A stretch of 64,000 bases of DNA from Macrostomum lignano (taxonomy: Eukaryota). The translations under genes and the position numbers were made by a program. Below the pieces are notes generated by a model that searched no databases, had not been told where the DNA came from, and was given only the letters and a program-made list of their open reading frames with translations. Shown piece after piece: positions 18,480 through 42,090 of the stretch; within the stretch, counting starts at the first letter, position 1; each line of letters starts with the position of its first letter. The stretch covers positions 26,570 to 90,569 of the forward strand of contig NIVC01000030.1 in NCBI GenBank assembly GCA_002269645.1, read 5' to 3'.

Positions 18480-18990
18480 AGAAAGAGAGAAGATCGGAGA
18501 AAGGGGAAAGGACAGGAGAGGAGCAAGGGAAGATAGGAGATAAGAGGAGAAAGTAGGTGAGCGAGGGGAGAGATGAGAGGAAAGGAGAGACTAGAGATAA
18601 GATAAGAGGAGAAGCGAGAGATAAGAGAGGAGAGGGGAGAGAAGGTGAGATAGAGGAGAGGTTAGATGAGGTGAGAGAGGATAGGGGAGACGAGATGAGA
18701 GAGAGAAGAGGGGACGGGAGGTGAGAGAGAAGATGGGAGAGAAAAGATGGGAGAGGACGAGAATGAGGTGAAATAGAGTAGAGGGGAGACGAGAAATAAA
18801 AGGGGAGATTAGAGATGAGAGATGAAAAAAGACGAGAGGGGAGAGAGGAAAGGGAAGAGAGTGGAGATACCCAGGAGAGTGGAAAAGAGGTGAGAATGCA
18901 GAGATGAGAGGAGGGAGATAGTGGAGGGGGAGAGGAGAGGAAGGAAGTAAGATAAGAAAGAAAAAACGGAAAAATACAAGAAAGCTAAGA
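18480..18990. repeat. Purine-rich (GA) low-complexity tract upstream of FLAD1
   Basis: About 500 bp almost entirely G/A. Confidence 0.85.
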
Positions 18991-19259
18991 AGAAACATAA
19001 ACATTGAGCGGTCCGAATTGCTATTGTGAAGTTTCAAAGGACCCGAGGGTCGGATAGAGAGGCTTCACGGGCTGAAGCGGACAGTGCATTAGTAAAGGTG
19101 TTATATGTCTGTTTGAGTACACTTTGATGAAATTAAAAATTTCGCTTTAATTTTTCTGCATGGTTCAGGTGTACAGGTGATAGTACATTTGGATTCTACT
19201 GAAGAAAAGATTTCTTTAAAGATGAATAGATTTTTCTTTTCGAAATTATCTAATCGTTG

Positions 19260-22200
19260 ATGCACTGCATGTCTAATTGTTTTCTAATTAACATTGCTTC
19301 TTCGATAAGACCTGGACGTAAACTCTTGTTAAATTGTTCCGCGCAGAGCTTACGCTGTTTCAAAATATCAGCAGCAGCAAAAACAAAGACTACAGGAATG
19401 CAGCAGACCCCAAGCTTCGCTAGTAATAGACGTTTCGCTCTTCTGGTTATTGGCGATGAAATTCTTAAAGGCCAAGTTGCCGATACCAACACTTATTATC
19501 TTTGTCGTCAGTTAACTTCGCTGGGTCATCGAGTTTGCGAAGTGTCAGTCATAGCGGATTCCAAACAGGTCATTGCCGATCGAGTCCGGTATCTGTCAGC
19601 CAACTATGATTACGTCATCACCACAGGCGGCATTGGGCCGACGCATGACGATGTCACTTTTGAAGCAATCGCTGGCGCCTTCAACGAAACGACGCATCAT
19701 CATCCTGAGTTGGTGTCGATTGTTAGACAATATTTTGATAAAACTGCTGATCCTAACGAACCAATTGAGTCCTATATTCACAAGCCTTACATGCGACTGT
19801 GCCGGGTGCCGTTGTCAGCTGTGCTAAATTACGGATTTGATGCTAGCACTAGCAAACGCTCCGAATATCCGGTAGTTAGCGTTAGCAACGTTTTCGTCTT
19901 TCCTGGCGTGCCGAGTCTGTGCAAGAAGGTGATTCTTTGAAAATTTAGATGCATATTTTCCTATAAATGCAATGCGTCGCGTTCAAAACTGCACATTGAA
20001 CTTAGCTCGTTTCCTTGAAAGCAACGGAAGTCAAAACTTGTGATACTAAATCAACTAAGCGAAAATTGGTAGAGAGGTACATTTTGCTTTTTTGGACTTA
20101 AGCCAACAAGCTACGAGTACTTAAGTCATTCAAGAACGCCAGCCATTTAACAGGATGTAGCTCGTAAAAGTGTCAGCTGAGACTTATTAGTCTTGACGAT
20201 TCAGCATATGGATGAACACGTAAAAAAGCTTTCTGGGGTGTTTCATAGATTTTACAAGCTACAACCTGAATAGCTACAAGTTACAAGCTAAAAGAAAGAT
20301 TGTTTAACAAGGCTGCTTGTAGATTTTAGCCAAAAAAAATTACGTTTACAAGCTTGTAGCTATTTTTTATCGTCTATGGTAAATACATCTACGTCTTCGA
20401 AGACAGTTAACTTGGAAACGCAACGAGCGTCGGGGATAACCAAATAAGGCTTAAATACTATCAGACAATTCTTATGCATGTTCCTCCCGAAACCTTGACA
20501 TGTAATCGATGTAGTTCGCGTTCCAGATGAAATTTACACACTCTTCAAACGTGTGCCACCGCTTGAGTTCGACAGAGTCTTTGCTATCATCATGAGACGA
20601 GTCAAATAACACAATAATTTAATCAAAATAATAGTTGAAGGCAAGAAGACAAAAAGTGCTTCAATAACAAATTTACAAGCTTGAGCTTGAGCAAAAGAAG
20701 ACAACTCTTCAACTTTTCAGCCAAAACGCTTGTAGCACGAACTTGTAACTATTCTCTTGTAGCTTGTAAAACCTTGTAGCTTCGCTAAAATATATAATCG
20801 GAAAATCCTTGATTGAAAAAAACATCAATTAAATAGCCATTGAAAAATTCTCCTGAAACTAATAGTCGTACAGCAAATGACACCGCTATGTTTAAGGCAG
20901 GGCACGTAGTGTATAGGTATATAATATAATAAAACTAAAGACTATCACACTTATAAATCACCCAATTAACTAAGGCCTACCGACTGATGGAGAGCCAGTT
21001 CAAAGGTCGCAATCAGCAGCAACAATCATCAAATTCTGTCAACAGTACTGACAAGGCCTCTTCTAGAAGCAACGATTCCCCATCGCCAGTACCAATCGAT
21101 ACGGCCGATAATATCTATATTAATCGGGACGAAATTAATCTGACACCAATTATTGATAATTTGGTTGCAAAATTTCCCAGCGTAACAATTGGCAGCTATC
21201 CAGAATGGCACAATCGATATTATAAGACTCGGATTTATCTGGAAGCTGGTACGGTGGACGAATTGACAGCTTGTAGGAAGTTTCTTACCGATCAATTTGA
21301 CGCTAAAGAGTTGGTTCGTTACGACCCCGATCCAGTGAAACGCGCCAACATTAAAGTTGAACAATTTATTGTTGATACACAATCCGACAATCTGAACCAG
21401 TTTCAACTGGCATTCGATGTTGCTAAACGAGCTATTAGTAACTATGGACTAGATGCTATCGCTGTTGGTTTCAATGGCGGCAAAGATTGTACAGCCTTGT
21501 TGCATTTGGTGTACGCTGCTGCCGCCGCTACTACTACTATTGGTAGTAGTAAGGGTTAGTGTAAAATTCTTACATTTTCTATGCGTACGCAAGAATTAAT
21601 ATATTGGATAGGGCCGCAACCCTAAGTGGCGCCAATATTTGATCTCTTAGTGAGCGTCCTTGTCTCTTGGTGGGCGCCCCTGTCTCTTAGTGAGCGTCCC
21701 TGTCTCTTGGTGGGCGTCCCTGTCTCTTGGTGGGCGTCCCTGTCTTTTGGTGGGCGCCCCTGTCTCTTAGTGAGCGTCCCTGTCTCTTGGTGGGCGTCCC
21801 TGTCTTTTGGTGGGCGTCCCTGTCTTTTGGTGGGCGCCCCTGTCTCTTAGTGAGCGTCCTTGTCTCTTGGTGGGCGTCCCTGTCTCTTAGTGAGCGTCCC
21901 TGTCTCTTGGTGGGCGCCCCTGTCTCTTAGTGAGCGTCCCTGTCTATTGGTGGGCGCCCCTGTCTCTTAGTGATCGTCCCTGTCTCTTGGTGGGCGCCCC
22001 TGTCTCTTAGTGAGCGCCCGTGTCTCTTAGTGGGCGCCCCTGTCTCTTGGTGGGCGTCCCTGTCTCTTGGTGGGCACCCGTCTCCTGGTGGTCGCCCCTG
22101 TCTCTTGGTGGGCGCAGCTGTCTCTCTTGGTGGATGCCCCTGTCTCTTGTGGACGCCCCTGTCTTTTGGTGGGTGGGCGCCCCCTGTCTCTTGGTAGATC

Positions 22201-22807
22201 CCCCTTATCCCTGGATCGCGCCTGGCCCCCTCTGCGTACACTACTAATATCGATAGTTTTAATTTTAACAACTGGTACTGTCTGTTAGTTAGTTGTCTAT
22301 ACATATCGGTAGTTAAACAACAGTGAAGCAATACAACTCGTTAATGCACACCGTCTGTCTCAATTTTTTAGGCCAACAACAGCAGAAATTGCGCCTGCTC
22401 TATTTGCGTTCTCGACAACAATTTCCCGAAGCCGAATTGTTTATCGATGAAACTGTAGAACGATATTCGCCTAATGTGCAGCTGCTTGCTTACGAAGGCG
22501 ATATGAAGGTAATTTCTGATTATCTGGAATAGATTCTACTGATTTCGTACTGACTGTAACGCTTTCGATTCTGTACAAATTGATAGAAATAAATTTGTAT
22601 CGATCCTCTTCCTTCGACTTCTATTTATTTTTCAATTCACGTTTAGACCTGTCTTCACGAGATGAAACGCGATTGGCCAAGCATTAGAGCCGTGTTCATG
22701 GGCACCAGAAGCACAGATCCTCGGTCTGGCCATCTGAACTATGAGCAGGTATGTTGTTTGAGTCTTTGTTTGAGTCTTTGTAGTAAGTAAATTTGTAGTA
22801 GTAACAG

Positions 22808-22861
<54 letters not shown>

Positions 22862-22935
22862 CCTATCTATCTATATATCTATCTATCTTCCTATCTATCA
22901 TCTATCATCTATCTATCTATCTATCTATCTATCTG

Positions 22936-22966
<31 letters not shown>

Positions 22967-23034
22967 GTCTATCTATCTATCTATCTATCTATCCATCTGT
23001 TTATCTATCTACAAAATTTGTATATATCTATCTT

Positions 23035-23114
<80 letters not shown>

Positions 23115-23567
23115 TATTTGATATTTCCCGCCATACATGACAGATGAGTGCAGGTTAAAACGCCACACTTATCAACAGACATTAAGCCCCACTGTACACT
23201 GTACAGTGCTGCAGTATCAATCAATTTTTCTCAGATGACGGACGTTGAGGCTGGATGGCCGGAGTTCCTGCGCATCTCGCCGCTGCTCCAGTGGTCCTAC
23301 TCGGACGTGTGGCGATTCCTCCGCACCCTCTGCCTGCCCTACTGCCCGCTGTACGATCGGGGCTACACGTCTCTAGGCGACATGTCCAACACGCACCCCA
23401 ATCCCAAGCTGCAGTACAAAGATTCGCGTGGATTGTTAAAGTACATGCCGGCCTATTGTTTAGAGTCGGGTAGCGACGAACGGAAAGGCAGAAATCAGCA
23501 GCCGCAGCAGACTGAGTCTTCATCTGGGCCAGATGCCAAGAATGGCGGAGCCAGGCCTGCGTTGTGA
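19260..23567 (+). CDS. FLAD1: Bifunctional FAD synthase with an N-terminal molybdopterin-binding/CinA-like domain and a C-terminal PAPS-reductase-like domain
   Basis: Exons 19260-19928, 20975-21554, 22372-22508, 22647-22748 and 23235-23567 are phase-consistent. Motifs: IGDEILKG, TGGIGPTHDD, FPGVP, IGSYP, FNGGKDC, MGTRSTDP, LYDRGYTSLG. Confidence 0.93.
21645..22195. repeat. Intronic 20-bp minisatellite CCTGTCTCTTGGTGGGCGTC
   Basis: Directly visible in FLAD1 intron 2. Confidence 0.95.
22808..23114. repeat. (TATC)n and (TAG)n microsatellites in FLAD1 intron 4
   Basis: TATC at about 22808-22990, TAG at about 23034-23114. Confidence 0.95.
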
Positions 23568-23729
23568 TTTGCTTTTTTATTCAATTGATTACTTGAAAGA
23601 CATTTTCCAATCAATTAGTTCTTTCTCAGTGGTTTTGTTTAATAACAATGCGAATCGATATTTTTGAATTTCTGTGTTTAGGCAATTTCATTATTGTATA
23701 TTTAATAGTATGCTAAGCTGAAGTTGTCA

Positions 23730-24050
23730 GGGGGGGGCGTAACCCAGTGGTCCAGCGCGGCCCTCTGTTGTGCCAGCGGCCCAGGCTCGATTCCAAGTGC
23801 AGTCAACATTAATTTGCAGTGCAGTGAAGTGTACACTGTACACTCCTGTGTGAGTGTGTGCCTGTGCGTATGACTGCGTACGTATCCGCGCGCTTGTGTG
23901 CCAACGGCGCAGACCCCCCCCTCCCCTTTGCCGATAACGCCACACCCCCAAGGCACAGAAAGTGTACATGCCAGACGGTTAGAAAGCCAGAGCCGCTGTA
24001 CACCCTGTGTGAGCGTGTGCGTGAGTGCGTGTCTGTGTACGTTATTGGCG
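23730..24050 (+). mobile_element. tRNA-derived SINE family B, internally deleted and rearranged copy
   Basis: G-run, then CGTAACCCAGTGG (A box) and GGCTCGATTCC (B-box-like) followed by AAGTGCAGTC. It matches the copies at 41726-42090 and about 58815-59060. Confidence 0.75.
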
Positions 24051-24409
24051 CGTTGGTATGTGCTCAAAAGTCAAGGGACTGGGTGGTTTTAAGACTATGT
24101 CACCGAAGGTATTTCGCCAGGGTGTCCACTACCATCCTGCGAATATCCTGCTAGCAAATTATTGATTAATTTTTACTGTCTCTCTGCGTGCATCATTATT
24201 GTTTTTCTTTTAATTACAAAAGTAAATCTTCGCATAATTTTGTTTAGTTTATAATTGACGTTGGTGTAGAGTAGATGTTTTTTAGTGTTGAGAACTTACA
24301 TTTAGTTAGTGCTCTAAGTTATAGTTCTTAAAATTAATCTATAGTTTTCTTTTATTTGTTGCTTTGTAGTTAAATTTGATTGATTGTATGCAACTGTGTG
24401 TCTAATAAG

Positions 24410-24651
24410 GCAGAAAGACAGACAAATAGGACACAGCAGGACAGACACTAAACAGACACTAGGATAGGTAGACAGACAGACATTATGACAGGAAGACAGA
24501 CAGACAGACACTAGGACAGGTAGACAGACAGACAGACAGACACACACTAGGACAGGTAGACAGACACTAGGACAGGCAGAAAGACAGACAGACACTAGGA
24601 CAGGTATGCAGACACTAGGACAGGTAGACAGACAGACAGACAGACAAACAA

Positions 24652-24710
<59 letters not shown>

Positions 24711-24780
24711 CTAGGACAGGCAGACAGACAGACAGAAACTAGGACAGGCAGACAGACAGACAGACAGACAGTAGGACAGG

Positions 24781-24814
<34 letters not shown>

Positions 24815-24930
24815 CTAGGACAGGCAGACAGACAGACAGAAACTAGGACAGGCAGACAGACAGACAGACAGACAGACACTAGGACCGGCAGACAGACAGA
24901 CAGACAGACACTAGGACAGGTAGACAGGAC
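24410..24930. repeat. (GACA)n microsatellite with ACTAGGACAG interruptions
   Basis: Directly visible upstream of the TMEM9 coding start. Confidence 0.95.
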
Positions 24931-25050
24931 CGGCAAAAGTGTACACACGCGGTCAGACAAATAAATGTTTGGCTTTTTTTTTAACTTATATTTTTTCTAT
25001 ATTAAACGTTTTTTTCAGTCAACCTTTAATAATCTTTCAGTCATTTAAAA

Positions 25051-25470
25051 ATGGCTCCGCTTCTTCTACTCGCTTTCTGCTTTCTTCCTCTCCTAGTAGA
25101 CGGCAGCTCGGAGAGTTTCTTTTTGGAAGATTTTGCCGACACTCGCTGCAAATGCGTCTGTCCGCGAGGCTTCCCCGCTGCTCCTACTGCTGCTGCTCCC
25201 ACGGCCGCCGCAGCTGTCAAGGACTCCGCAGCTGCCACTCAGCCTCAGAAGCGTCGAGTCTGGGTTGCTCAGGTCCGACCCGGCGAGAAATGCGGCTGCG
25301 AAGCCACCGTGACCGCTTCGGCCGCCTCCGCCTCCGCCGCCTCGGCTGCCGCTCAACTCGCCGAATATTGCAGACGGTGCAAATGCCAGGCTGAGAGCAG
25401 GAATTCCGCTGTGCAGAAGGTGAGGCTGTTTGTCTGAATCTGTCTGTCTGTCTGTGTGTCTGTCTGTCTT

Positions 25471-25515
<45 letters not shown>

Positions 25516-25526
25516 CTGTCTGTCTT

Positions 25527-25567
<41 letters not shown>

Positions 25568-25581
25568 CTGTCTGTCTTTCT

Positions 25582-25615
<34 letters not shown>

Positions 25616-25701
25616 CTGTCTGTCTTTCTGTCTGTCTGTCTGTCTGTCTGTGTGTCTGTCTTTCTGTATGTCTGTCTGTCTATCTGTTTGTGTGTCTGTC
25701 C

Positions 25702-25755
<54 letters not shown>

Positions 25756-25768
25756 CTGTCTGTTTGTG

Positions 25769-25811
<43 letters not shown>

Positions 25812-25818
25812 CTGTGTC

Positions 25819-25871
<53 letters not shown>

Positions 25872-25908
25872 GTCTGTCTGTGCGTCTGTCTGTCTGTCTG
25901 TCTGCCTT

Positions 25909-25957
<49 letters not shown>

Positions 25958-26442
25958 GTGTCTGTCTTTCTATCTATCTACAATCTGTCATTTTGTGTAC
26001 TAATATAGACTATTTTCATTTTTAAGTGTATCCCCTTGTACTCATAAACCAACTGCTGCAGGTGGTGATAATCTCCCTACTGTTAACCATTGGCTGCCTG
26101 TGCCTCTACATGCTGCTGCTGTTCCTGCTGTGGAGCAGCCGCGGCGCTCGCGACCAAACCGGCCGGACGTGTCGCGCTTGGCTGTCGGACATTTACCAGC
26201 TGATCTGCTGCCGACACCCTGACGGAGTTGTCGGAGCCGAGGATGAGCAGGCCTTCCCTAGAGAGGATGCTGATACCGGCCATTCAGACGAGGGAGCTTC
26301 GGTTGGCGATTGGTCGGGAGTTCGAATCCGGACAGCTAGCGACGCGGTGGTAACCAGGGCTCGGGCTAAACAAGCCGAGTGGTCGAAATCTGTGGCGGCT
26401 CAAAGAGACAGGGTTTATCGGCATCGGTCTATGCTGCAGTGA
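25051..26442 (+). CDS. TMEM9: TMEM9-family type I membrane protein
   Basis: Exons 25051-25419 and 26062-26442. Signal peptide, DTRCKCVCP...CGC...YCRRCKC cysteine pattern, TM segment [20 protein letters not shown], and C-terminus [19 protein letters not shown]. Confidence 0.88.
25430..25975. repeat. (TCTG)n microsatellite in TMEM9 intron 1
   Basis: Directly visible. It is the reverse complement of the upstream (GACA)n. Confidence 0.95.
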
Positions 26443-26589
26443 CTATTCTCTTAATCCTCATGATCTGTATCTCAATTATTATGGTATCTAGTCAGTGTCT
26501 GTTGCTGGTTATTGTCTAAACTGTTGCTAACCCCTTGTTTTTTGCCCCTTTCCACTAATTAACGCTATTGGAAACCTATATAATTAAGC

Positions 26590-27050
26590 GATAGTTGACA
26601 CCCCAATTAGGCGACTTCTGACACCTTAATTAGGCAAAGTCTGGCACGCAAATTAGACTACTCCTGACACTCAAATTAGGCCATTTCTGATAGCTAATAG
26701 AGGCGACTTCTGACACCCAAATTAGGCAAAGTCTGATACTCGAATTAGAAAAATTCTGACACCCAAATTCGACAACTTCTGACACCCAAATTAGACAAAT
26801 TCTTACACCCAAATCAGGGGACTTCTGACACCCTAATTAGGCAAAGTCTGGCACGCAAATTAGGCCATTTCTGACACCTAATATAGGCAACTTCTGACAC
26901 TCAAATTAGACGACTTCTAACACCCGACCGAATTAGGCAATGTCTGACACCCAAATTAGGTGACTTCTGACACCCCAACTAGGCGACTTCTGAAACTCAA
27001 ATTAGGCCACTCCTGACATTCACATTAGGCCATTTCTGACACCCGGATTA
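26590..27050. repeat. Degenerate minisatellite of about 21-23 bp, TTCTGACACCCAAATTAGGCGAC
   Basis: Directly visible downstream of TMEM9. Confidence 0.85.
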
Positions 27051-27827
27051 AGCGTCTGTGATCCCCTGATTGGTGTCCTCTTAAAGACCTAGCAAATAAT
27101 TGGAGGTTCTCTTCCAGGTCTTTTCCGTACCCTCGTTTAGCTTTCTATGCGATCAATAAAAGTACAGCTACGATTACGAAGCAATGAGTGTTTTTTTAAA
27201 ACACTCAGCTCGTGCAATAAATTCAAATGCTGTGCTACCATTGCAATACGTTTAAACAATTTTTGTTTTACATTTTTGCTTGGATTTGAATTTTGCATAC
27301 AAACGCGCTATTCTAAGTTGTATTAGTGGCTAAATAATCTGGTCATGATTTTATATTATCTTATCGTTAAAAACCTTTAAATCTATCTATATGTGCTTTT
27401 AATGTTCAAAGGTGTACTTTTAGTTCAGAATTTTAAGATTTCACAACGATTATTTTGTTTTTATTAGTTGCCTTCAAAAGCTTTAATATTGTAACGAATA
27501 TTTTTTTACCCTTAACTGAGATTGGTCACGCTTATTGGTAAAGATTTTTGGCTCCAAGCAATAATTCGATTATAATCTTTGTTATGTAGCGAACATTTTT
27601 CTTGAAAAAAACGTTTTAAATCTTTATTTGCATTTTTAATAAAAAATTATAATTTTTTGTAATTTATAACGCCCTACTATAGTACTTAAATCTGAGTTAT
27701 ATTCATTTCATTATTTTTGTATCTAAACTACTTAAAAGTAGGTCATAAGTAGAATAGTTGTCGTTTTGTCGAAAAATTCAATTTTTATTTGTATTTTTCT
27801 GGCTGCTTTTTAAACATTATATAGCTC

Positions 27828-30800
27828 ATGAAGCTTCGCTGCAAACTACAAGGCGGACCCACCAGTCCTCCTGGTGGCGGTGCTCAAACGGTTGAACTGT
27901 CCGATAATGCTACTCTAAGTAGTCTGATTAGCGCAGTGGCAGCCGAATATGGCGTAGCTGCCGATTCTATTCAATTGAGCCAGAATGGCCGAGACCCATT
28001 GTCAGCTCCTGCTGACTCCACGCCTGACAGTACTAGTGTCAGGAGTTTGGGTTTAGTGCCCGGCGATCTTATCTACGTGCGCTCCTCTTCTGGTACTACA
28101 GTTTCTGGTAAGTTGGCCGGCCGATATGTATGTATTTGTTATTGTTTTATTTCTTTAAACTACTGAAGGTGTCAAGTCAGTAGTCGTCATGGATATTTTT
28201 ATTAGCAAGTATGCACTTTCATCAGTTGCTCTAGAAGATGACTGACTGATACGTATCGAAGTACTGTTTTTATATAATATCCGATATGTATCGAAAAAAA
28301 TTGTTTTTTACGTTACGATATGCATCGAAGAAAATGTTTTTTAAACTATTCCATATGTATCGGAAAAAAATTCATGCTATCCGATATGTATCGAAAAACT
28401 GTTTTTTTAAATATCCGATATGTATCCAAAAACTATTTTTTAAATATCCGATATGTATCGAAAAAAGAGTTTTTCATGCTCTCCGATATGTATCAACAAA
28501 CTGTCCTTATGCTATTTGATATTTGATATGTTTCAAAAACCTGTTTATCTTCGCCGATATGTATCTGAACGAGACTGTTATTATATTATCCGATATGTAT
28601 TGAAGGACAGTTATTATACTAACCGATATGTATCGAAATTAAACTTTGCACTCTATTATTTAAAGCCACAACAGGTGCACAGCCGTCACCAAGTAACTCA
28701 GCCAAATCAACTGCGCCAACTTCTAGCAAGAGTACGCCAACAGACTCAGCAGCCGCTGTACCAATTTTAGTCGGAGAAGTGCCCAATCGTTCTGTTCAGT
28801 TGTGCCCGTCGCTGCACTTGATGCAAAGATTGTACACCAACACTACTAATAGCGGGGCTACTACTATAAGTAGCCAATTGCTTCGATTCACTCTAGCCGC
28901 CCACTGTCTCATGGTGGAGACAGGATTCTTGTCTATTGACCCGGCAACTGGTCAGACTCATCAAGATTTGCTCTCTTCAGGATTCGAACCCGCGGGCCCA
29001 GAATCCGCTGCTGCCGCTAACCGAGTACTGACTCGGTATCTTCTGCCGGCCGAGTTTACTAACCATGAATCTTCGACCACTGCTGAACCTGTCTCCTACT
29101 CTATCCAATATATTTATCATTTAACCAGACAGAGCGAATTTGGATCGGCTGCTCCTAGAATTCTACTGAAAGTAGTGCGAACTGGTCAGTTAGTATTGTG
29201 TCATTGCGCTGTTTGGCAATCGGCTGTTGTTAGTCCTGATAGTGGCAGCGAGGAGAGGCCGACTGAAACTCTGTGTTGTCACTCGTGGCACTGCAGCCTG
29301 GACCGATTCGTGCCCAGTCGGTCGTCTAGCGGTACTGGATACGAAAATTTGAAACAACTATCTGCGTTGTTTAAAGACGCTGTGAGTTTGTTCGATGTTT
29401 TTTGCTGTAGGTTAAATGCTGAGTTGGAACTAGAAGCTAGCGATATGTATTGAAACATCTTCTGGCAGGCTACTAAACAATTCAGCCGATATATATATCG
29501 AAATAATCATTATTTAGCTACAAATATCTTATTAAAATATTACAGCCGATATGTATCGAAATTTGTATAAGTAAGCAGCTTATAGCCTATTAAAATACTA
29601 CAGTGGATATATATATCGAAATATTCATTAGTTAGCTACTACTAGTAATAGTCTTTTTAAAATACTACAGCCGATATGTATCGAAATATTCATTACTTAG
29701 CTCCTAATAGCCTATTAAAGATACTACAGCCGATATGCATTGAAATATTCATTAGTTTGCTACTGATAGCCTATAAAAATATTACAGCCGATATGTATCG
29801 AAATATTTATAAGTTAGCAGCTTAAAGACTATTAAAATGCTACTGTGGATGTATATCAAATTATTTATTATTAGCCACTAATAGCCTTTTTAAAATGCTG
29901 TAGCCGATATGTATCGAAATCGTAATTAGTTTGCTGCTGGTAGCCTATTAAAAGTATTACAGCCGATATGTATCGAAGTATTTATTAGTTAGCAGCTTAT
30001 ATCCCATTAAAAATACTACAGCCGATATGTATCGAAATATTCATTAGTTTGCTGCTGGTAGCCTATCAAAAGTCAGCCGATATGTATCGAAGTATTTATT
30101 AGTTAGCAGCTTATATCCCATTAAAATGCTGCTGTGGATATATTAAAATATTTATATGGTTAGCCACTAATATGCTTTTTAAAATACTAGAGCCGATATG
30201 TATCGAAATATTCATTAGTTTGCTACTGGTAGCCTATTAAAAATATTGCAGCCGATATGTATCGAAAAAGCGTTTCCCTTTAGAATTCATCAGTGAGTCT
30301 CAGCACAATACGCACTTAAATTAAAACTGCATACTTTTACTTTATTAAGTAGTATAATTCGCGCATCAATTTTTCTAGATAGCCGAACGAGCCAAGTCGG
30401 CCATACACGAAGCCTGCGGCCTGCCGCTCCGAGGCCTGACCGGCCTGCCTACAGAGCTGGTGCTGCGGATCATGCGCTACTGCCACGGGCCTCGCGCTGT
30501 CTGCTCGCTGGGAGAGGCTTGCCGCCGTCTGCAACTGCTGCACTCTGACAACTATGTGTGGCGGCCTATGCTGGTTAGGGACTATGGCACCGGCTCTGAG
30601 AGGGTTGCTCAGTACCTGCAGGCCGAACGGCAGGTGAGCTTGCTTGGGTAAGGGTGCCGGGCCAGCCTCCCAGATCCTCAGTTGCTGGGCCAGCCTCCCA
30701 GATCCTCAGTTGCCGGGCAAGCCTCCCATATCCTCAGTTGCCGGGCCAGCCTCCCATAGTGTCAGTTGCTGGGCCAAACTCATAGATCCTCAGTTGCTGG

Positions 30801-31541
30801 GCCAGCCTCCCAGAGTGTCAGTTGCTAGGCCAGCCTCACAGATCCTCAGTTGCTGGGCCAAACTCCCAGATCCTCAGTTGCTGGGCCAGCATCCCAGAGT
30901 GTCAGTTGCTGGGCCAACCTCCCAGATTGTCAGTTGCTGGGCCAGCCTCCCAGATCCTCAGTTGCTGGGCCAGCCTCACAGATCCTCAGTTGCCGGGCCA
31001 GTCTCAAATTCCCATTTCGAGCAGTCCCAAATCCTAATTTTGAGCAGTTCCTAATCCCCATTGTGAGCAGTCCCAAATCCCCATTTTGAGCAGTCCCAAA
31101 TCTTCATTTTGAGCAGTCCCCAAATCCTCATTTCAAGCAGTACAAAATCCCCATTTTGAGTAGTCCGAAACCTCCATTTTGAGCAGTCCTAAATCCCTGT
31201 TTTGAGCAGTCCCAAATCGCCATTTTGAGCAGTTCTGAATCCCCATTTTGAACAATCCCAAATCCCCCTCTGCCACCCTGCAGGGCCTGGAGGTGAACTA
31301 CTATGAAGCCTATCGAGTATTTCACGAGGAGCGAGTCAAGCGTCGGCGAATGCTGGCAAGGCTAAGCAGCCGTGAGCTCGCCCCGTTAGCGCCGCCGGCT
31401 CCATGGCTGGATCTGCCGGGCGTGCTGCCTCCTCTAATCGGGTTGAATCCATTTCAGGCCCCGTTGATGCTGCAACCGGAAATCCCAGAATTGCCGTTCA
31501 TACCCAGGCAGCACTTTCCGCCGCCTGCGGGTGAAGATTGA
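27828..31541 (+). CDS. FBXO7: F-box only protein 7 orthologue (Ubl-like, FP/PI31-like region, F-box, Pro-rich tail)
   Basis: Exons 27828-28107, 28675-29381, 30379-30633 and 31284-31541 are phase-consistent. N-terminal MKLRCK Ubl-like segment, LKQLSALFKD, F-box GLTGLPTELVLRIMRY...VWRPMLVRDY, and a Pro-rich C-terminus. Confidence 0.85.
28245..30270. repeat. Two intronic arrays sharing the palindromic core CCGATATGTATCGAAA
   Basis: About 12 copies at about 34-bp spacing in intron 1 (28245-28640) and about 15 copies at about 59-bp spacing in intron 2 (29440-30270). Confidence 0.9.
30650..31265. repeat. FBXO7 intron 3: 28-bp CAGCCTCCCAGATCCTCAGTTGCTGGGC array followed by a ~23-bp CCCCATTTTGAGCAGTCCCAAAT array
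   Basis: Directly visible, with the switch at about 31010. Confidence 0.92.
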
Positions 31542-31689
31542 GCAACTCATTTCATAACTAAGTTGGTCATTTACGGGGCTTTGTTTGTGGAATATTGAGT
31601 TCGAGTTGAGTAAGGAACCGTTTTTTAAAAGACGTGGGCTAGTTTCAGTTGTGGTAATTTTTATGTCCGGACTATAACTGTCTTTATGC

Positions 31690-32460
31690 GAGTTTAGTTA
31701 GTTTTTTAGGTCTATTTAGTTGGTTTCAGGTCCCGTTTAGTGTTTTTTGGGTCTATTTAGCTAGTTTTAGTTCTATTTGGTTAGTTTTTTAGGTCTATCT
31801 GTTGGTTTCAGGTCCGTTTTAGTGTTTTTAGGGTCTATTTAGCTAATTTTAGTTCTATTTATAGTTAGTTTTTTAGGTCTATCTGTTGGTTTCAGGTCCG
31901 TTTTAGTGTTTTAAGGGTCTATTTAGCTAGTTTTAGTTCTATTTTGGTTAGTTTTTTAGGTCTATCTGTTGGTTTCAGGTCCGTTTTAGTGTTTTTAGGG
32001 TCTATTTAGCTAGTTTTAGTTCTATTTAGTTAGTTTTTTAGGTCTATCTAGTTGGTTTCAGGTCCGTTTAGTGTTTTTTGGGTCTATTTAGCTAGTTTTA
32101 GTTCTATTTAGTTAGTTTTTTAGGTCTATCTAGTTGGTTTCAGGTTCGTTTAGTGTTTTTTGGGTCTATTTAGCTAGTTTTAGTTCTATTTAGTTAGTTT
32201 TTTAGGTCTATCTAGTTGTTTTTAGGTCCGTTTAGTGTTTTTAGGTCTATTCAGCTAGTTTTAGTTCTATTTATAGTTTGTTTTTTAGGTCTATCTGTTG
32301 GTTTCAGGTCCGTTTTAGTGTTTTAAGGGTCTATTTAGCTAGTTTTAGTTCTATTTTGGTTAGTTTTTTAGGTCTATCTGTTGGTTTCAGGTCCGTTTTA
32401 GTGTTTTTAGGTCTATTCAGCTAGTTTTAGATCCAATTATAGTCATTTTTCGGCCCATTT
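31690..32460. repeat. T-rich tandem repeat with a unit of about 80 bp
   Basis: Recurrent GGTCTATTTAGCTAGTTTTAGTTCTATTT...GGTTTCAGGTCCGTTT. Confidence 0.9.
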
Positions 32461-32740
32461 AGCTAGTTTTAGATCTGTTTAACAGTATAACTACCAAAGA
32501 GGGCGGAATTCCCCCTCCCCTGACAATTTTTTGGCTGCGCCGGAACGGAGCAACGCAGGCACACGAAATTCAAGAACACGGACTAACTTTTTATTGCGCA
32601 CCTTCTCAAACAAGAATCAAGTCTCCAGCCCCCCCCCCGGACCGTCGAGATATTCGACGATTCTGCCAGAAGGTGGGATTTTTCCCATAAGCGCCAGTGT
32701 ATTCAGTACACCCCTGTGCGCCAATCTCCAAATTTCATCA

Positions 32741-33121
32741 GCACGTCGATCACATGTGTCTGCATCGGTTCTGCCTTCGTTGGTCGCTGGCCTTCACCCA
32801 GGTGGAGCTTCTGGACCTTCAAAAGGTGGCACTTGGTGACTATGAACACGTTGTTGCAACGTTGATCTTCATGGTCACCTAGTGCCACCTGTTGAAGGTT
32901 CGGCAGCGTCCGGGTGATGACGGAATACCTGAGAGACCAGCTGAGGATGCCCAGCAGTTGAGTTTTGCCCATTTGAAGCTTGATAAGAAAATTCTGACAT
33001 AATTGCAACAGGATCTACATTGTCACCTGGTGTCACCTGTTGGAGGTCCAGAGGCTCCACCTGGGTGGGGGCCAGTGACCAGCGGGGGCGGAACTGATGC
33101 AGACACATGTGGTCGACGTGC
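32741..33121. repeat. Long imperfect inverted repeat (arms of about 100 bp) with an inner inverted copy
   Basis: 32741-32840 pairs with 33022-33121 (GCACGTCGA.CACATGTGTCTGCATC...GGTGAC). 32874-32899 is a further inverted copy of 32815-32840. Confidence 0.85.
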
Positions 33122-33499
33122 AAGTCAAAATAGTTAGCTTCAGCTTGGATTATTTAGCCAGCTTTAGAATAGACGATCGTGTGTGATCCCCGAAATGTTC
33201 GTATGTATGCATGCACATTATTTTCATCGTCAATTGTCAACTTGGTTTACACACGTTTTCATGCTGACTCAGGCCATATTCTTTCAAAACTCGATGAACT
33301 CTGTCCGGGCGGACATCTGTCGGTTGAACTTTAAAATTGGAAAATACACGGTGGAAAACAGACTGATTGTATTGGCATTAATTTTGTTGATTTACACAAT
33401 TTTTTAATTGTTCTGTCTCGCTTTGGTTTGTTAAATATTTTACTAGGGAGTTTCGGGTCTCGTGAAATCTGAGTAATTCCCTCCGAACTCTAAAGCATC

Positions 33500-35260
33500 T
33501 AAGAATTCCCCTTTAACTTTATACTAGTAGGATAATTCCCCCTCAGCTTGATACTAATAATTCCCCTTCAGCTTGATACTAGTAGGGTAATTCCCATTCA
33601 GCTTGATACTAGTACGGTAATTCCCCTTCAGCTTGATACTAGTAGGGTAATTCCCCTTCAGCTTGATACTATTAGGGTAATTCCCCTTTAGCTTGATACT
33701 AGTAGGGTAATTCCCCTTCAGCTTGATACTAGTAGGGTAATTCCCCTTCAGCTTGATACTAGTACGGTAATTCCCCTTCAGCTTGATACTAGTAGGGTAA
33801 TTCCCCTTCAACTACGAGCGTAGTAGGGTAATTCCCCTTCAGCTTGATACTAGTAGGGTAATTCCCCTTTAGCTTGATACTAGTAGGGTAATTCCCCTTC
33901 AGCTTGATACTAGTAGGGTAATTCCCATTCAGCTTGATACTAGTAGGGTAATTCCCCTTCAGCTTGATACTAGTAGGGTAATTCCCATTCAGCTTGATAC
34001 TAGTAGGGTAATTCCCCTTTAGCTTGATACTAGTAGGGTAATTCCCCTTCAGCTTGATACTAGTAGGGTAATTCCCCTTCAGCTTGATACTAGTACGGTA
34101 ATTCCCCTTCAGCTTGATACTAGTAGGGTAATTCCCCTTCAACTACGAGCGTAGTAGGGTAATTCCCCTTCAGCTTGATACTAGTAGGGTAATTCCCCTT
34201 TAGCTTGATACTAGTAGGGTAATTCCCCTTCAGCTTGATACTAGTAGGGTAATTCCCCTTCAGCTTGATACTAGTAGGGTAATTCCCATTCAGCTTGATA
34301 CTAGTAGGGTAATTCCCCTTCAGCTTGATACTAGTAGGGTAATTCCCCTTCAACTACGAGCGTAGTAGGGTAATTCCCCTTCAGCTTGATACTAGTAGGG
34401 TAATTCCCCTTTAGCTTGATACTAGTAGGGTAATTCCCCTTCAGCTTGATACTAGTAGGGTAATTCCCCTTCAGCTTGATACTAGTAGGGTAATTCCCAT
34501 TCAGCTTGATACTAGTAGGGTAATTCCCCTTCAGCTTGATACTAGTAGGGTAATTCCCATTCAGCTTGATACTAGTAGGGTAATTCCCCTTCAGCTTGAT
34601 ACTAGTACGGTAATTCCCCTTCAGCTTGATACTAGTAGGGTAATTCCCCTTCAACTACGAGCGTAGTAGGGTAATTCCCCTTCAGCTTGATACTAGTAGG
34701 GTAATTCCCCTTTAGCTTGATACTAGTAGGGTAATTCCCCTTCAGCTTGATACTAGTAGGGTAATTCCCATTCAGCTTGATACTAGTAGGGTAATTCCCC
34801 TTCAGCTTGATACTAGTAGGGTAATTCCCATTCAGCTTGATACTAGTAGGGTAATTCCCTTTCAGCTTGATACTAGTAGGGTAATTCCCCTTCAGCTTGA
34901 TACTAGTAGGGTAATTCCCCTTCAGCTTGATACTAGTACGGTAATTCCCCTTCAGCTTGATACTAGTAGGGTAATTCCCCTTCAGCTTGATACTAGTAGG
35001 GTAATTCCCATTCAGCTTGATACTAGTAGGGTAATTCCCCTTCAGCTTGATACTAGTAGGGTAATTCCCATTCAGCTTGATACTAGTAGGGTAATTCCCT
35101 TTCAGCTTGATACTAGTAGGGTAATTCCCCTTCAGCTTGATACTAGTAGGGTAATTCCCATTCAGCTTGATACTAGTAGGGTAATTCCCCTTCAGCTTGA
35201 TACTAGTAGGGTAATTCCCCTTCAGCTTGATACTAGTAGGGTAATTCTCCTTCAGCTTGA
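33500..35260. repeat. 30-bp minisatellite TTCAGCTTGATACTAGTAGGGTAATTCCCC, roughly 58 units
   Basis: Highly homogeneous. A variant unit containing CAACTACGAGCGTAG recurs at about 33809, 34140, 34351 and 34652. Confidence 0.97.
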
Positions 35261-35324
35261 CACCAGGTAAGCAATCTTAAAAAAAACCATATTTTGAACT
35301 GCGAGAAACCTTCAGCTTTCAGCC

Positions 35325-35600
35325 ATGGCCAGCTCAGGTCCCCAGAATCCGTCTCAAATCATGCCACTGGAACTCGTTGACAAATGCATCGGTTCGAAAA
35401 TTCACATCAAAATGAAAGGCGACAAAGAACTTGTTGGCACCTTGTTGGGATTTGATCCCTACGTGAATATGGTGCTTGAGGATGTTGTGGTGTACGAGAT
35501 CAGCTCTCAGGGTAAGAAAGTTACGAGGCTTGAGCAGATATTGCTCAATGGCAACAATATTGCATTGATGATTCCCGGTGGTGAAGGACCCGACAACTGA
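35325..35600 (+). CDS. LSM5: U6 snRNA-associated Sm-like protein LSm5, coding region intronless
   Basis: 91 aa. [38 protein letters not shown]...[27 protein letters not shown] at 35700-35705. Confidence 0.97.
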
Positions 35601-35984
35601 TTCTGGCGTTCAATAAGTTTATTTTACTTCAACTATAAACTTTATCCTGTTTGTATATTAATAATGTTAATTGGCATTTCTTAGTTGACTAATTACACTA
35701 ATAAAGAAACCGTTTGTACCTGTAATAGTTGTTTGGTTAAAATAAAATAAACTTGGCATGTGTTGCAATACACTAGACAGTTTTCATATGGAAATATTGT
35801 CCAATAGGTATGTTTTAGCTTGTTCTTTTAATGTACTATAAACGTATAGTATACCCCCGGGTAGGCGCCTCGCCACCGGGGGGGGGGGACAGAGGGGACA
35901 TGTCCCCCAGTAAAAGCTATGGTCCCCCACCCCACCTTGTGACCCGTTGAGGTAATCAATTATTTTTCTTCAGGGCACCAAAAT

Positions 35985-36770
35985 ATAGCGCCTGCGGTGC
36001 TAAAATGAGTGCCTGCGGCGCTAAAAGGAGTGCCTGCGGCGCCAAAATGAGTGCCTGCGGCGCTAAAATGAGTGCCTGCGGCGCTATAATGAGTGCCTGC
36101 GGCGCTAAAATGAGTGCCTGCGGCGCTAAAATGAGTGCCTGCGGCGCTAAAATGAGTGCCTGCGGCGCTAAAATGAGTGCCTGCGGCGCTAAAATGAGTG
36201 CCTGCGGCGCTATAATGAGTGCATGCGGCGCTAAAATGAGCGCCTGCGGCGCTAAAATGAGTGCCTGCGGCGCTAAAATGAGTGCCTGCGGCGCTATAAT
36301 GAGTGCCTGCGGTGCTAAAATGAGTGCCTGCGGCGCTAAAATGAGTGCCTGCGGTGCTAAAATGAGTGCCTGCGGCGCTAAAATGAGTGCCTGCGGTGCT
36401 AAAATGAGTGCCTGCGGCGCTAAAATGAGTGCCTGCGGCGCTAAAATGAGTGGCTGTGGCGCTAAGATGAATGCCTGCGGCGCTAAAATGAGGGACTGCG
36501 GCGCTAAAATGAGTGCCTGCGGCGCTAAAATGAGTGCCTGCGGCGCTAAAATGAGTGCCTGCGGTGCCAAAATGAGTGCCTGCGGTGCCAAAATGAGTGT
36601 CTGCGGTGCCAAAATGAGTGTCTGCGGTGCCAAAATGAGTGCTTGCGGTGCCAAAATGAGTGCCTGCGGTGCCAAAAGGAGTGCCTGCGGCGCTAAAATG
36701 AGTGACTGCGACGCTAAAATGAGTGCCTGCGGCGCTAAAATGAGTGCCTGCGGCGCTATAATGAGCGCTG
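35985..36770. repeat. 21-bp minisatellite AAAATGAGTGCCTGCGGCGCT, possibly inside a MITE with GC-rich ends
   Basis: Directly visible. GC-rich G-run termini lie at about 35860-35910 and 36845-36873; no TSD was found. Confidence 0.93.
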
Positions 36771-37007
36771 ACAACACGTTTCTCAAAATAATGGAAATGG
36801 GAATTTAGTCATGTACAAGTACATGTTGGATTCTTGGTTTTCTCACCCCCTCCCCCCAGGGTGTACATGCCCTGACAGTTGCCAGGGTCCAACAATAATT
36901 CAAGGACTATTTGATGTTGTTTAAAAGTTTCGTAGATACTTAAAGTACTTTTTATAGTTAAAAGCTGAACTAATTATTAGCTCTTTCACTTTCAGCTGCT
37001 ATCAGTC

Positions 37008-39820
37008 ATGCTGGCGAGTCACCTACAGAAGACCAAGAATGTTTTTATACAATCTGCTATTCTGGCCTCGAACTCTTGTTGCCATGGAAATGTGGCGGTT
37101 CCTCGTCACGCCAACCAGTTAAATAGTCGCAGCATTAGCACCAGTCCGGTTCGCTGCACTGTGCTCAAGCGGCCTCCGAAATGGGCCAGCAGCTACGTGC
37201 GCCGGCTCAACGCGATGGAGCGGTTAGAACTGATGGCCGCTTTGAGACTGGATGCTGAGCAACATGGGACTGCGGGTGAGGAGCCTTGGCTGGATTTTAC
37301 CAGCCTCCCAGATCCTCAGTTGCTGGGCCAGCCTCCCAGATCCTCAGTGGCTGGGCCAGCCTCCCAGATCCTCAGTGGCTGGGCCAGCCTCCCAGATCCT
37401 CAGTGGCTGGGTCACAAGCCTCCCAGATCCTCAGTGGCTGGGTCACCAGCCTCCCAGATCCTCAGTGGCTGGGTCACCAGCCTCCCAGATCCTCAGTTGA
37501 TGGGCCAGCCTCCCAGATCCACAGTTGCTGGACCACCAGCCTCCCAGATCCTCAGTTGCTGGGTCACCAGCTTCCCAGATCCTCAGTTGCTGGGTCACCA
37601 GCCTCCCAGATCCTCAGTTGCTGGGTCACCAACTTCCCAGATCCTCAGTTGCTGGGTCACCAGCCTCCCAGATCCTCAGTTGCTCGGTCACCAGCTTTCC
37701 AGATCCTCAGTTGCTGGGTCACCAGCCTCCCAGATCCTCAGTTGCTGGGTCACCAACTTCCCAGATCCTCAGTTGCTGGGTCACCAGCCTCCCAGATCCT
37801 CAGTTGCTGGGTCACCAACTTCCCAGATCCTCAGTTGCTGGGTCACCAGCTTTCCAGATCCTCAGTTGCTGGGTCACCAGCCTCCCAGATCCTCAGTTGC
37901 TGGGTCACCAGCCTCCCAGATCCTCAGTTGCTCGGTCACCAGACTCCCAGATCCTCAGTTGCTGGGTCACCAGCCTCCCAGATCCTCAGTTGCTGGGTCA
38001 CCAGCCTCCCAGATCCTCAGTTGCTCGGTCACCAGCCTCCCAGATCCTCAGTTGCTCGGTCACCAGCCTCCTAGATCCTGTTACGTATTATATGTATTTT
38101 TTATTAAATTATGCGACATCTTATTTAATTTTTCAACAGCCGATCAAACAAGCGCTTCAGCTGCGTCAGCGGAGCCTGAAACTAAAACTGCTACTGCTGG
38201 AGTGGCTCAGCCTACAAGAGATCAATTACGTCAAGGTACGAATATTGTATAATATTAATCATTTTCCTTATTGTTCTGCTAGTTACTCTGTTTCATTGTT
38301 AAATATTTATTTCAGTGTTCACTTTAAGCGCCATTCCGTTTGTTGGATTTGGATTCTTCGACAATGCCATCATGATTGTGGCTGTGAGTTTGCTGTGGAT
38401 GCTAAGGGTATGGGACTTGGGTTGAGGGGGAGATTATCATGTTAATGAGAGGGAGATTATCATGTTAATGAGAGGGAGATTATCATGTTAATGAGAGGGA
38501 GAGTATGAGATTGATGAGAGGGAGAGGGTGACATTGATGAGATGGAGAGGATGACATTGATGAGAGGAAGAGGGTGAGATTGATGAGAGGGAGAGGGTGA
38601 GATTGATGAGAGGAAGAGGGTGAGATTGATGAGAGGGAGAGGGTGACATTGATGAGAGGAAGAGGGTGACATTAATGAGAGGGAGAGGGTGACATTGATG
38701 AGAGGGAGAGGGTGACATTGATGAGAGGGAGAGGGTGACCATTGATGAGAGGGAGAGGGTGACCATTGATGAGAGGGAGAGGGTGACATTGATGAGAGGG
38801 AGAGGGTGACATTGATGAGAGGGAGAGGGTGACCATTGATGAGAGGGAGAGGGTGACATTGATGAGAGGGAGAGGGTGACATTGATGAGAGGGAGAGGGT
38901 GACATTGATGAGAGGGTGACATTGATGAGAGGGAGAGGGTGACATTGATGAGAGGGTGACATTGATAAGAGGGAGAGGGTGACATTGATGAGAGGGAGAG
39001 GGTGACCATTGATGAGAGGGAGAGGGTGACATTGATGAGAGGGAGAGGGTGACATTGATGAGAGGGAGAGGGTGACATTGATGAGAGGGTGACATTGATG
39101 AGAGGGTGACATTGATAAGAGGGAGAGGGTGACATTGATAAGAGGGAGAGGGTGACATTGATGAGAGGGTGACATTGATAAGAGGGAGAGGGTGACATTG
39201 ATAAGAGGGAGAGGGTGACATTGATGAGAGGGAGAGGGTGACATTGATGAGAGGGAGAGGGTGACATTGATGAGAGGGAGAGGGTGACATTGATGAGAGG
39301 GAGAGGGTGACATTGATGAGAGGGAGAGGGTGACATTGATGAGAGGGTGACATTGATGAGAGGGAGAGGGTGAGATTGATGAGAGGGAGGGTGAGATTGA
39401 TGAGAGGGGGATGGGGAGATGGAGGTGGATATAGAGAGGCTGAGATGGACAACCGAGACAAAAAATCATCTATAACTGAGTGTTAAACCTCCCAGCGCGC
39501 TCTCCAACTGACAGGGCGAGTACATTGACTTGACCCTGGGTGCAGCTTTCTGCATCAGCACGTTAGCCGCAGCGGCGCTTGGCAACTGGGTGTCCGACCT
39601 GGCCGGCCTCAGCCTGGCCGGCTGGGTGGAAGGCATGACCAGCCGGCTGGGGTTCGAGACGCCCAGATTGACTCCGCAACAGCTGGAGCTGCGATCGACC
39701 AGATGGGCCACCGTGTTTGGCCGGAGTCTGGGCATCTCGCTGGGCTGCCTTCTGGGCATGCTGCCCCTGCTGTTTATTGACACCGATGAGGCTGACGGCG
39801 AGGATGATAAAGGGAAATAA
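37008..39820 (+). CDS. TMEM65: TMEM65-family mitochondrial inner-membrane protein
   Basis: Exons 37008-37275, 38140-38235, 38316-38383 and 39515-39820 are phase-consistent. AIPFVGFGFFDNAIMIVAGEYIDLTLG..ISTLAAAALGNWVSDLAG, with a presequence-like N-terminus. Confidence 0.9.
37296..38075. repeat. TMEM65 intron 1 minisatellite: 28-bp unit shared with FBXO7 intron 3, then a 31-bp GGGTCAC variant
   Basis: CAGCCTCCCAGATCCTCAGTTGCTGGGC, then CAGCCTCCCAGATCCTCAGTTGCTGGGTCAC. Confidence 0.95.
38425..39410. repeat. 23-bp minisatellite ACATTGATGAGAGGGAGAGGGTG in TMEM65 intron 3
   Basis: Directly visible. Confidence 0.95.
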
Positions 39821-41725: not shown

Positions 41726-42090
41726 CTTTTTTTATTAGAGGCAGGGGGTTGTGTGCACCCTGGCGCACTTTAAGCGACATAGGCACACAACCGGCGAGAG
41801 ACATTGTTGCCCATTCCGCCGACTCCCCTGAGCAGGCACACAAGCGCGCGGATACGTACGCAGGCACACACTCACACAGGAGTGTACAGCGGCCCTAACT
41901 TTATTTTATCCTTAGGTATGTACACTTCACTGCGCCTTGGGGGGTTGGCTCTCAAGGCCGTTAATTGCACGAGCAGAGCGAAGCCGAGATTCCAATTCAG
42001 CCCCAAATTAATGTGACTGCACTTGGAATCGAGCCTGGGTCGCTGGCACACCAGAGCAGCTGCGCTACCGCTGGGCTACGCCCCCCCCCC
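41726..42090 (-). mobile_element. tRNA-derived SINE family B, apparently full-length
   Basis: On the minus strand: G10, TAGCCCAGCGG (A box), GGCTCGATTCC (B-box-like), and a 3' end CCTCTAATAAAAAAAG. An 11-bp TSD CTACCGGTAAT lies at 41715-41725 and 42091-42101. Confidence 0.88.

Follow-up and report, generated by a model that had tools for sequence, protein, structure and literature searches.

A probable spliced-leader-resolved operon of five housekeeping genes with repeat-inflated spacing in Macrostomum lignano

Five intact housekeeping genes lie head to tail on the plus strand of contig NIVC01000030.1 of Macrostomum lignano (assembly Mlig_3_7, GCA_002269645.1). They encode FAD synthase (FLAD1), TMEM9, a protein with a ubiquitin-like (UBL) region and an F-box, LSM5, and TMEM65. 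The run occupies positions 19260-39820 of the 64,000-nucleotide stretch analyzed here (NIVC01000030.1:26570-90569), which is called the window and whose coordinates are used throughout. We regard the locus as probably an operon that is resolved by spliced-leader (SL) trans-splicing and whose spacing has been inflated by repeats; our probability for this reading is about 0.68. The same reading was put forward in an original prediction made from the letters of the sequence, so trans-splice acceptors and an operon layout can be picked out correctly in bare sequence. It is now supported, indirectly, by annotated 5' ends of genes at or beside the candidate acceptors, by the acceptor motif, and by the published biology of the species. 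Operons of this type have already been published for this genome; the locus is ordinary and not new in kind.

M. lignano has a single 35-nt SL, CGGTCTCTTACTGCGAAGACTCAATTTATTGCATG, and its published trans-splice acceptor motif is [T/C]TNCAG (PMC8629364). About 15% of its genes are assigned to operons of 2-9 genes, and operons of two genes (75%) and three genes (18%) prevail, the maximum being nine (PMC8629364). About 60% of SL-trans-spliced genes stand outside operons (PMC8629364). A substantial share of the intergenic distance in operons consists of repeats (Ustyantsev and Berezikov 2021, PMC8629364). After subtraction of repeats with TRF and RepeatMasker, the distances between trans-spliced neighbours are bimodal with a main peak at about 100 bp, and the operon threshold is a repeat-adjusted 1 kb (PMC8629364). 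Genes of this assembly were annotated with the TBONE pipeline, in which transcriptional units are cut at SL-read peaks and poly(A) reads (Wudarski et al. 2017, PMC5730564) and units clustering at 95% identity get a common prefix (PMC5730564). According to the annotation authors, the units usually break artificially at repeat-rich operon spacers (PMC8629364).

The sequenced DV1 line carries a duplicated large chromosome (PMC8629364). This fits our observation of three near-identical copies of the locus: the window copy and those on ctg1948 and ctg422, which are 97-99% identical to it by sequence comparison. No SL RNA gene was found in the window: the 35-nt SL has no match there at up to 3 mismatches, and the Rfam and tRNA scans are empty.

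Pfam families and exon models confirm the order, strand and intactness of the five genes, as originally claimed, and the NCBI annotation lists only plus-strand genes, with no opposite-strand gene inside the run, on all three copies. The models were built with GT-AG introns and constrained by annotated product lengths. In the order of the run they contain 606, 252 (249 from the ATG), 502, 91 and 248 (245 from the ATG) residues. The FLAD1, TMEM9, F-box and TMEM65 models are identical, residue for residue, to deposited M. lignano proteins, and these genes are thus intact and correctly delimited.

Each of the four downstream genes has an acceptor-like AG directly before its ATG, and inspection of the sequence located all four exactly where they had been predicted. 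For TMEM9, the plus-strand acceptor TCTTTCAG (25033..25040) ends 10 nt before the ATG. The F-box gene is preceded by TATAG (27820-27824, ending 3 nt before the ATG) and LSM5 by CTTTCAG (35316-35322, ending 2 nt before the ATG), both on the plus strand as well. TMEM65 has a plus-strand CTTTCAG at 36989-36995 and a second TCAG at 37002-37005, its ATG being at 37008. Three of the four acceptors (TMEM9, LSM5 and TMEM65) fit [T/C]TNCAG, while the F-box gene has TATAG. The FLAD1 coding sequence is complete from its ATG at 19260 and has no trans-splice-type acceptor there, which fits the role of first gene of the run.

Acceptor-like motifs might occur by chance in any gene-dense stretch with genes on the same strand, and a YAG does lie within 12 nt upstream of 36% of the ATGs in the window. 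The specific motif is much rarer: [T/C]TNCAG ends within 15 nt upstream of about 4% of window ATGs, which gives a probability of about 2.5e-4 for at least three fits in four. In addition, annotated transcript starts fall on the AGs. We therefore consider mere coincidence extremely improbable.

The annotated 5' ends tell more than the motif. An open reading frame (ORF) annotated as 5'-partial and starting at an AG indicates that the annotated mRNA begins there; in the pipeline, peaks of SL reads determine where such starts are placed. All four downstream genes have an annotated 5'-partial start at or beside the flagged AG on at least one of the three copies. The TMEM9 coding sequence is 5'-partial from 25042, the first in-frame codon past the AG. 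The F-box coding sequence of ctg422, also 5'-partial, opens with “LMKL”, i.e., with the codon directly past TATAG. On ctg1948 and ctg422 the G of the AG is the first base of the annotated LSM5 coding sequence (“AMASSG”). TMEM65 is 5'-partial on ctg422, where it opens with “LLSVM”, from the codon past CTTTCAG; in the window it is annotated from 36999, within 3 nt of the acceptor, and on ctg1948 its annotated start lies just past a downstream AG. Addition of the SL to the downstream genes at the flagged AGs is thus supported, indirectly, by RNA-seq-derived annotation together with published biology.

A further trace of the SL may be present in the assembly itself. On ctg422 the TMEM65 acceptor (corresponding to window positions 36989-36996) reads CTTTATG instead of CTTTCAG; the two changed bases give it, right at the junction, the ATG in which the SL ends. 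Since Mlig_3_7 was polished by Pilon with RNA-seq reads plus DNA reads, this ATG may be an assembly artefact, namely an imprint left where SL-bearing reads overwrote the genomic sequence.

The AGs could also be mainly ordinary cis acceptors of 5' untranslated region (5'UTR) introns that begin at upstream non-coding exons, with the SL uninvolved. In the window copy, the annotation indeed uses the LSM5 AG as the 3' end of an 18.2-kb intron. A strong donor-like site, CAG/GTAAGC, lies at 35264-35272, 55 nt upstream of the LSM5 acceptor and within the degenerate end of a 30-mer array; it could set up a 56-nt cis intron competing with the SL at LSM5. Moreover, flatworm acceptors often serve both cis- and trans-splicing (PMC12582326). 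Still, other copies carry 5'-partial coding sequences from the AG, as cuts at SL peaks predict, three of the four sites match the SL acceptor motif, and the terminal ATG of the SL stands at the ctg422 TMEM65 junction. Purely cis use of these sites is accordingly improbable in our assessment.

The terminal AUG of the SL would be in frame with the F-box gene (adding ML) and TMEM65 (adding MLLSV). It would be out of frame for TMEM9 and LSM5, where it would open overlapping upstream ORFs, that of LSM5 having 31 codons. Among Logan RNA-seq contigs, none from M. lignano surfaced for these proteins; the related-species contig SRR30276812 has no SL, but just 19 nt precede its ATG.

From stop codon to ATG, the four spacers (S1 to S4 in the order of the run) measure 1483, 1385, 3783 and 1407 bp, in agreement with the predicted range of 1.4-3.8 kb. 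Tandem arrays occupy 31%, 32%, 67% and 55% of them, respectively. Their original description as largely short interspersed element (SINE) or satellite sequence is fair for S1, S3 and S4 and overstated for S2, one third of which is array. After subtraction of TRF arrays, the distances from stop codon to acceptor are 1015, 933, 1235 and 619 bp, 3'UTRs included, and that of S1 falls to about 700 bp once its SINE is also removed. Hence S1 (with the SINE removed), S2 and S4 lie within the operon rule of less than 1000 bp, and S3 is at 1235 bp, counted from the stop codon. Because the adjusted distances contain 3'UTRs, distances determined in the published manner would be shorter.

All four spacers are considered here on the plus strand. 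S1 (23568..25040) contains a tRNA-derived SINE at about 23727-24030 and a GACA-type array at 24470-24927; its sole canonical AATAAA, at 24960, is downstream of the array and 75 nt before the acceptor. S2 (26443..27824) contains a 23-mer array at 26596-27044 and unique, AT-rich sequence that has AATAAA at 27155, 27216 and 27638, the last of which is about 180 nt before the acceptor. In S3 (31542..35322), an 82/20-mer array (31693-32481) and a 30-mer array (33504-35260) are separated by about 1 kb of mixed sequence, which includes an inverted repeat of 119 bp. S4 (35601..36995) includes a 21-mer array at 35990-36765 and the LSM5 3'UTR, in which AATAAA occurs at 35700 and 35741. The closeness of AATAAA to the acceptors in S1 and S2 suggests that at least part of the “inflation” sits in long 3'UTRs and that the true intercistronic stretch is short.

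The positions of the arrays are common to all three copies, and their copy numbers differ. The 82-mer array of S3 spans 789, 1230 and 1471 bp in the three copies, the 30-mer array of S3 spans 1757, 1004 and 850 bp, and the 21-mer array of S4 spans 776, 99 and 797 bp. The arrays are thus dynamic, but they predate the duplication. Repeat-free spacers are absent from all three genomic copies, and a compact ancestral spacing is therefore not directly seen. On ctg1948 the 21-mer array of S4 is down to 4.7 copies and the spacer is still 1421 bp long, about 700 bp of other, loosely repetitive sequence filling the place of the array. Within these genes, arrays make up 66% of introns and 0% of exons; for example, the TMEM9 intron is 86% CTGT array, and introns 1 and 3 of TMEM65 are 87-90% array. 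Since introns are richer in arrays than spacers, the padding is a genome-wide habit and not a property of operon spacers.

Several features of the annotation lend partial support to co-transcription. TMEM9 (Mlig026909g2) and the ctg422 F-box gene (Mlig026909g5) have a common transcriptional-unit prefix, and in the older ML2 annotation TMEM9 and the F-box gene are fused in one 697-aa model. In parasitic flatworms, chimeric gene models are taken as a sign of polycistronic pre-mRNA, even across several kb (PMC12582326). TMEM65 on ctg1948 and FLAD1 on ctg422 are each “g2” of their units. Finally, LSM5 in the window is annotated as join(17070..17079, 35323..35600), which yields MQIS followed by MASSG... 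and uses the flagged AG as acceptor. This splice encloses an 18.2-kb intron and spans FLAD1, TMEM9 and the F-box gene. If the junction is real, a single precursor extends from before 17.08 kb through FLAD1, TMEM9 and the F-box gene to LSM5.

A number of observations weigh against the operon. The annotation splits the locus into at least 3-4 transcriptional units per copy. Trans-splicing alone does not prove co-transcription, because about 60% of SL-trans-spliced genes of this species are outside operons. The raw spacers are roomy enough for promoters. S3 remains above 1 kb unless its 3'UTR or other repeats make up at least 235 bp, and no canonical poly(A) signal, neither AATAAA nor ATTAAA, was found in S3. 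The gene suffixes g2 and g5 may count across the duplicated copies, which weakens the argument from names. The donor of the 17079-35323 junction (GTGGCT) is weak, and an SL-like 10-mer adjoins the junction, which may therefore be a pipeline artefact.

The same observations bear on a reading in which the genes are co-oriented and separately promoted, each being trans-spliced as a monocistronic outron-bearing transcript, and in which RNA crossing gene borders is low-level read-through. The location of most SL-receiving genes outside operons (about 60%, PMC8629364), the long raw spacers, and particularly the approximately 780 bp of unique AT-rich sequence in S2 agree with it. So do the different unit prefixes of FLAD1, TMEM9/F-box, LSM5 and TMEM65 and the fact that 2 kb of upstream sequence is usually enough for a promoter in M. 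lignano (PMC5730564). On the other hand, separate promoters do not account for the common TMEM9/F-box prefix and the ML2 fusion model, for the annotated splice across three genes, or for repeat-adjusted distances in or near the published operon class, and the division into units loses weight given that units break artificially at repeat-rich operon spacers (PMC8629364). We consider separate promoters the less probable reading, to be kept in mind nonetheless, and prefer the five-gene operon.

In such an operon, RNA polymerase II would make a long precursor through FLAD1, TMEM9, the F-box gene, LSM5 and TMEM65. The capped 35-nt SL would be trans-spliced to an acceptor 2-12 nt before the start codon, releasing each downstream cistron, and the upstream cistron would be cleaved and polyadenylated. 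The wide raw spacing would come from minisatellites and SINEs that fill non-coding DNA, i.e., introns, 3'UTRs and spacers alike. We infer the single precursor over all five genes, the poly(A) sites that it would use and the place of its promoter.

The original prediction sought this promoter near 19.0-19.3 kb, and the annotated splice at 17079 suggests a transcription start further upstream. The donor of this splice lies in a MARVEL (synaptophysin/synaptogyrin-like) gene, the last exon of which was placed at 17076..17237 on the plus strand by its translation and stop position; the Pfam MARVEL domain falls on the exon 14451-14810. The ctg422 annotation places a MARVEL gene of 257 aa at 2.0 kb upstream of FLAD1. 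The cryptic donor, ATCT/GTGGCT at 17079/17080, is 4 nt inside the last exon. Its GT is present in the window copy only, ctg422 having GC, a synonymous difference; the existence of the GT donor there alone explains why the LSM5 join model is confined to the window copy.

The 10-mer TTATTGCATG at 17063-17072 is identical to the last 10 nt of the SL and, even when shortened to an 8-mer, has no second occurrence in the window. Its place is the acceptor of the last MARVEL exon, and the annotated LSM5 model (MQIS...) starts with its ATG. An internal trans-splice site, an SL imprint of RNA-seq polishing and a chance match are all conceivable. The junction as a mis-mapped SL read, in the simple form of this idea, was rejected, because the SL does not contain CAGATCT, the 7 nt that separate the SL-like ATG from the junction.

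The promoter may be upstream of 17.07 kb, in which case the MARVEL gene is a sixth member of the operon. A fuller version of this idea is possible but doubtful: a six-gene unit of at least 23 kb would begin before 17.07 kb, either at the MARVEL gene or upstream of it, and a copy-specific synonymous C-to-T change would create a donor that captures the LSM5 acceptor 18 kb away, producing an LSM5 mRNA with an MQIS extension.

The individual genes, all on the plus strand, are as follows. FLAD1 (19260..23567) has five exons (19260-19928, 20975-21554, 22372-22508, 22647-22748, 23235-23567), and Pfam detects MoCF_biosynth, FLAD1_M and PAPS_reduct in 19257-23567. Its 606-aa model is exactly UniRef A0A1I8HKV0, “FAD synthase”, and the ctg422 copy is BOX15_Mlig015898g2. 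The introns of FLAD1 carry copy-specific insertions of about 2.8 kb on ctg422 (relative to window 23010-23035) and about 6.8 kb on ctg1948 (relative to window 22012-22808), which occupy microsatellite or array sites. As a result, the gene spans 4.3 kb in the window, 7.1 kb on ctg422 and more than 8.5 kb on ctg1948. TMEM9 (25051..26442; Pfam Tmemb_9) consists of exons 25051-25419 and 26062-26442 and is annotated as BOX15_Mlig026909g2, partial.

LSM5 (35325..35600; Pfam LSM) has a single coding exon. The exact 91-aa protein is not on record. The annotated LSM5 versions have 92 and 95 residues; our model matches the 92-aa version of ctg1948 and ctg422 and the 95-aa version BOX15_Mlig008622g1 of NIVC01000030.1. 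The last gene, TMEM65 (37008..39820; BOX15_Mlig004901g1, partial), has exons 37008-37275, 38140-38235, 38316-38383 and 39515-39820, with a Pfam TMEM65 match at 39530-39820. The NCBI annotation of NIVC01000030.1 lacks FLAD1, the F-box gene and the MARVEL gene, though all three are intact, probably because the 18-kb intron of the LSM5 model overlaps them.

The third gene (27828..31541; exons 27828-28107, 28666-29381, 30379-30633, 31284-31541) had been named FBXO7. Its 502-aa model is PAA62334.1, BOX15_Mlig026288g1, and the ctg422 copy is BOX15_Mlig026909g5. The architecture agrees with this name: there is a UBL-like N-terminus and a Pfam F-box-like domain in 27828-30651, followed by a proline-rich tail, although the ubiquitin-like signal at the N-terminus is weak. 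Orthology to FBXO7 is doubtful: searches against Pfam, of the PDB with phmmer and with a profile, and of a protein database gave no match to the PI31/FP domain or to FBXO7. The only matches of the protein were M. lignano proteins plus one Logan protein, 39% identical. Its AlphaFold model, based on a 3-sequence alignment, has a mean pLDDT of 46 and is too poor for use. We designate the protein FBXO7-like by architecture; FBXO7 itself is the weak call among the five names.

Some repeats are shared between parts of the window. A satellite family with the core CCAGCCTCCCAGATCCTCAGTTGCTGGG, in 28-nt and 31-nt units, is found in intron 3 of the F-box gene (30655-31005) and intron 1 of TMEM65 (37299-38079). 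All three forward frames are open through the 31-mer array, and a plain ORF scan consequently carries TMEM65 exon 1 through the intron and yields a 414-aa ORF. The tRNA-derived SINE has three copies in the window, at 23727-24030 (plus strand), 41830-42100 (minus strand) and 58830-59075 (minus strand), with an A-box-like TAGCCCAGCGGT and a B-box-like GGCTCGATTCCAAG. These boxes are visible by eye only, in the alignment of the three copies, and the S1 copy is internally deleted; neither ARAGORN nor Rfam at E<=1 makes a tRNA call for the head of the SINE.

Outside the run, a voltage-gated cation channel gene occupies 48075-63121 on the minus strand; it is split into several exons, and its introns contain arrays. 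It has Ion_trans and GPHH domains and an SCN5A-type IQ motif in a 365-aa C-terminal exon. Upstream of the MARVEL gene, a minus-strand ORF at 9741-10043 with a weak match to DUF4218 (transposase-associated) is probably a transposon remnant.

The locus resembles the operons described for M. lignano (PMC8629364, annotation PMC5730564) in having same-strand neighbours, [T/C]TNCAG acceptors, spacers swollen by repeats or transposable elements, an adjusted spacing of about 1 kb or less, and housekeeping genes. There is no difference in kind from them (PMC8629364): five genes are above the usual size, S3 is borderline, and there is a possible sixth gene.

With SL2-type operons of C. elegans it would share a polycistronic precursor and the formation of the upstream 3' end followed by downstream trans-splicing, and AATAAA is found here 75-190 nt before the acceptor in S1 and S2. 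Housekeeping, mitochondrial and RNA-processing genes are enriched in those operons (Blumenthal and Gleason 2003; Allen et al. 2011). In contrast to C. elegans, M. lignano has one SL ending in AUG and no SL2 specialised for downstream genes, and the raw spacers are 1.4-3.8 kb instead of about 100 nt. The locus is not an SL2 operon of the C. elegans type, given the single SL described, the kilobase spacers and a window free of SL RNA genes. Operons of Schistosoma and cestodes (PMC12582326) are similar in being SL-resolved polycistrons with acceptors shared between cis- and trans-splicing and with chimeric gene models. The thresholds applied to parasitic flatworms are at most 300 bp, and the S. 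mansoni median is about 99 bp (PMC12582326), whereas here the genes are separated by kilobases of satellite.

The importance of the locus beyond annotation is small. Once its promoter is located, it would be a candidate polycistronic expression cassette for M. lignano transgenesis. If the doubtful splice into LSM5 is true, it would show, in a natural setting, a newly arisen cis donor in competition with the SL for the acceptor of an operon. SL 3'-end imprints in an assembly polished with RNA-seq could flag trans-splice sites from DNA sequence alone. Such operons would escape the distance rules of 100-300 bp that are applied to nematodes and parasitic flatworms, and RNA-seq assemblers fragment them. 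The locus would be a single-locus example of a genome-wide finding: M. lignano retains SL-resolved operons despite satellites and SINEs that spread their cistrons kilobases apart.

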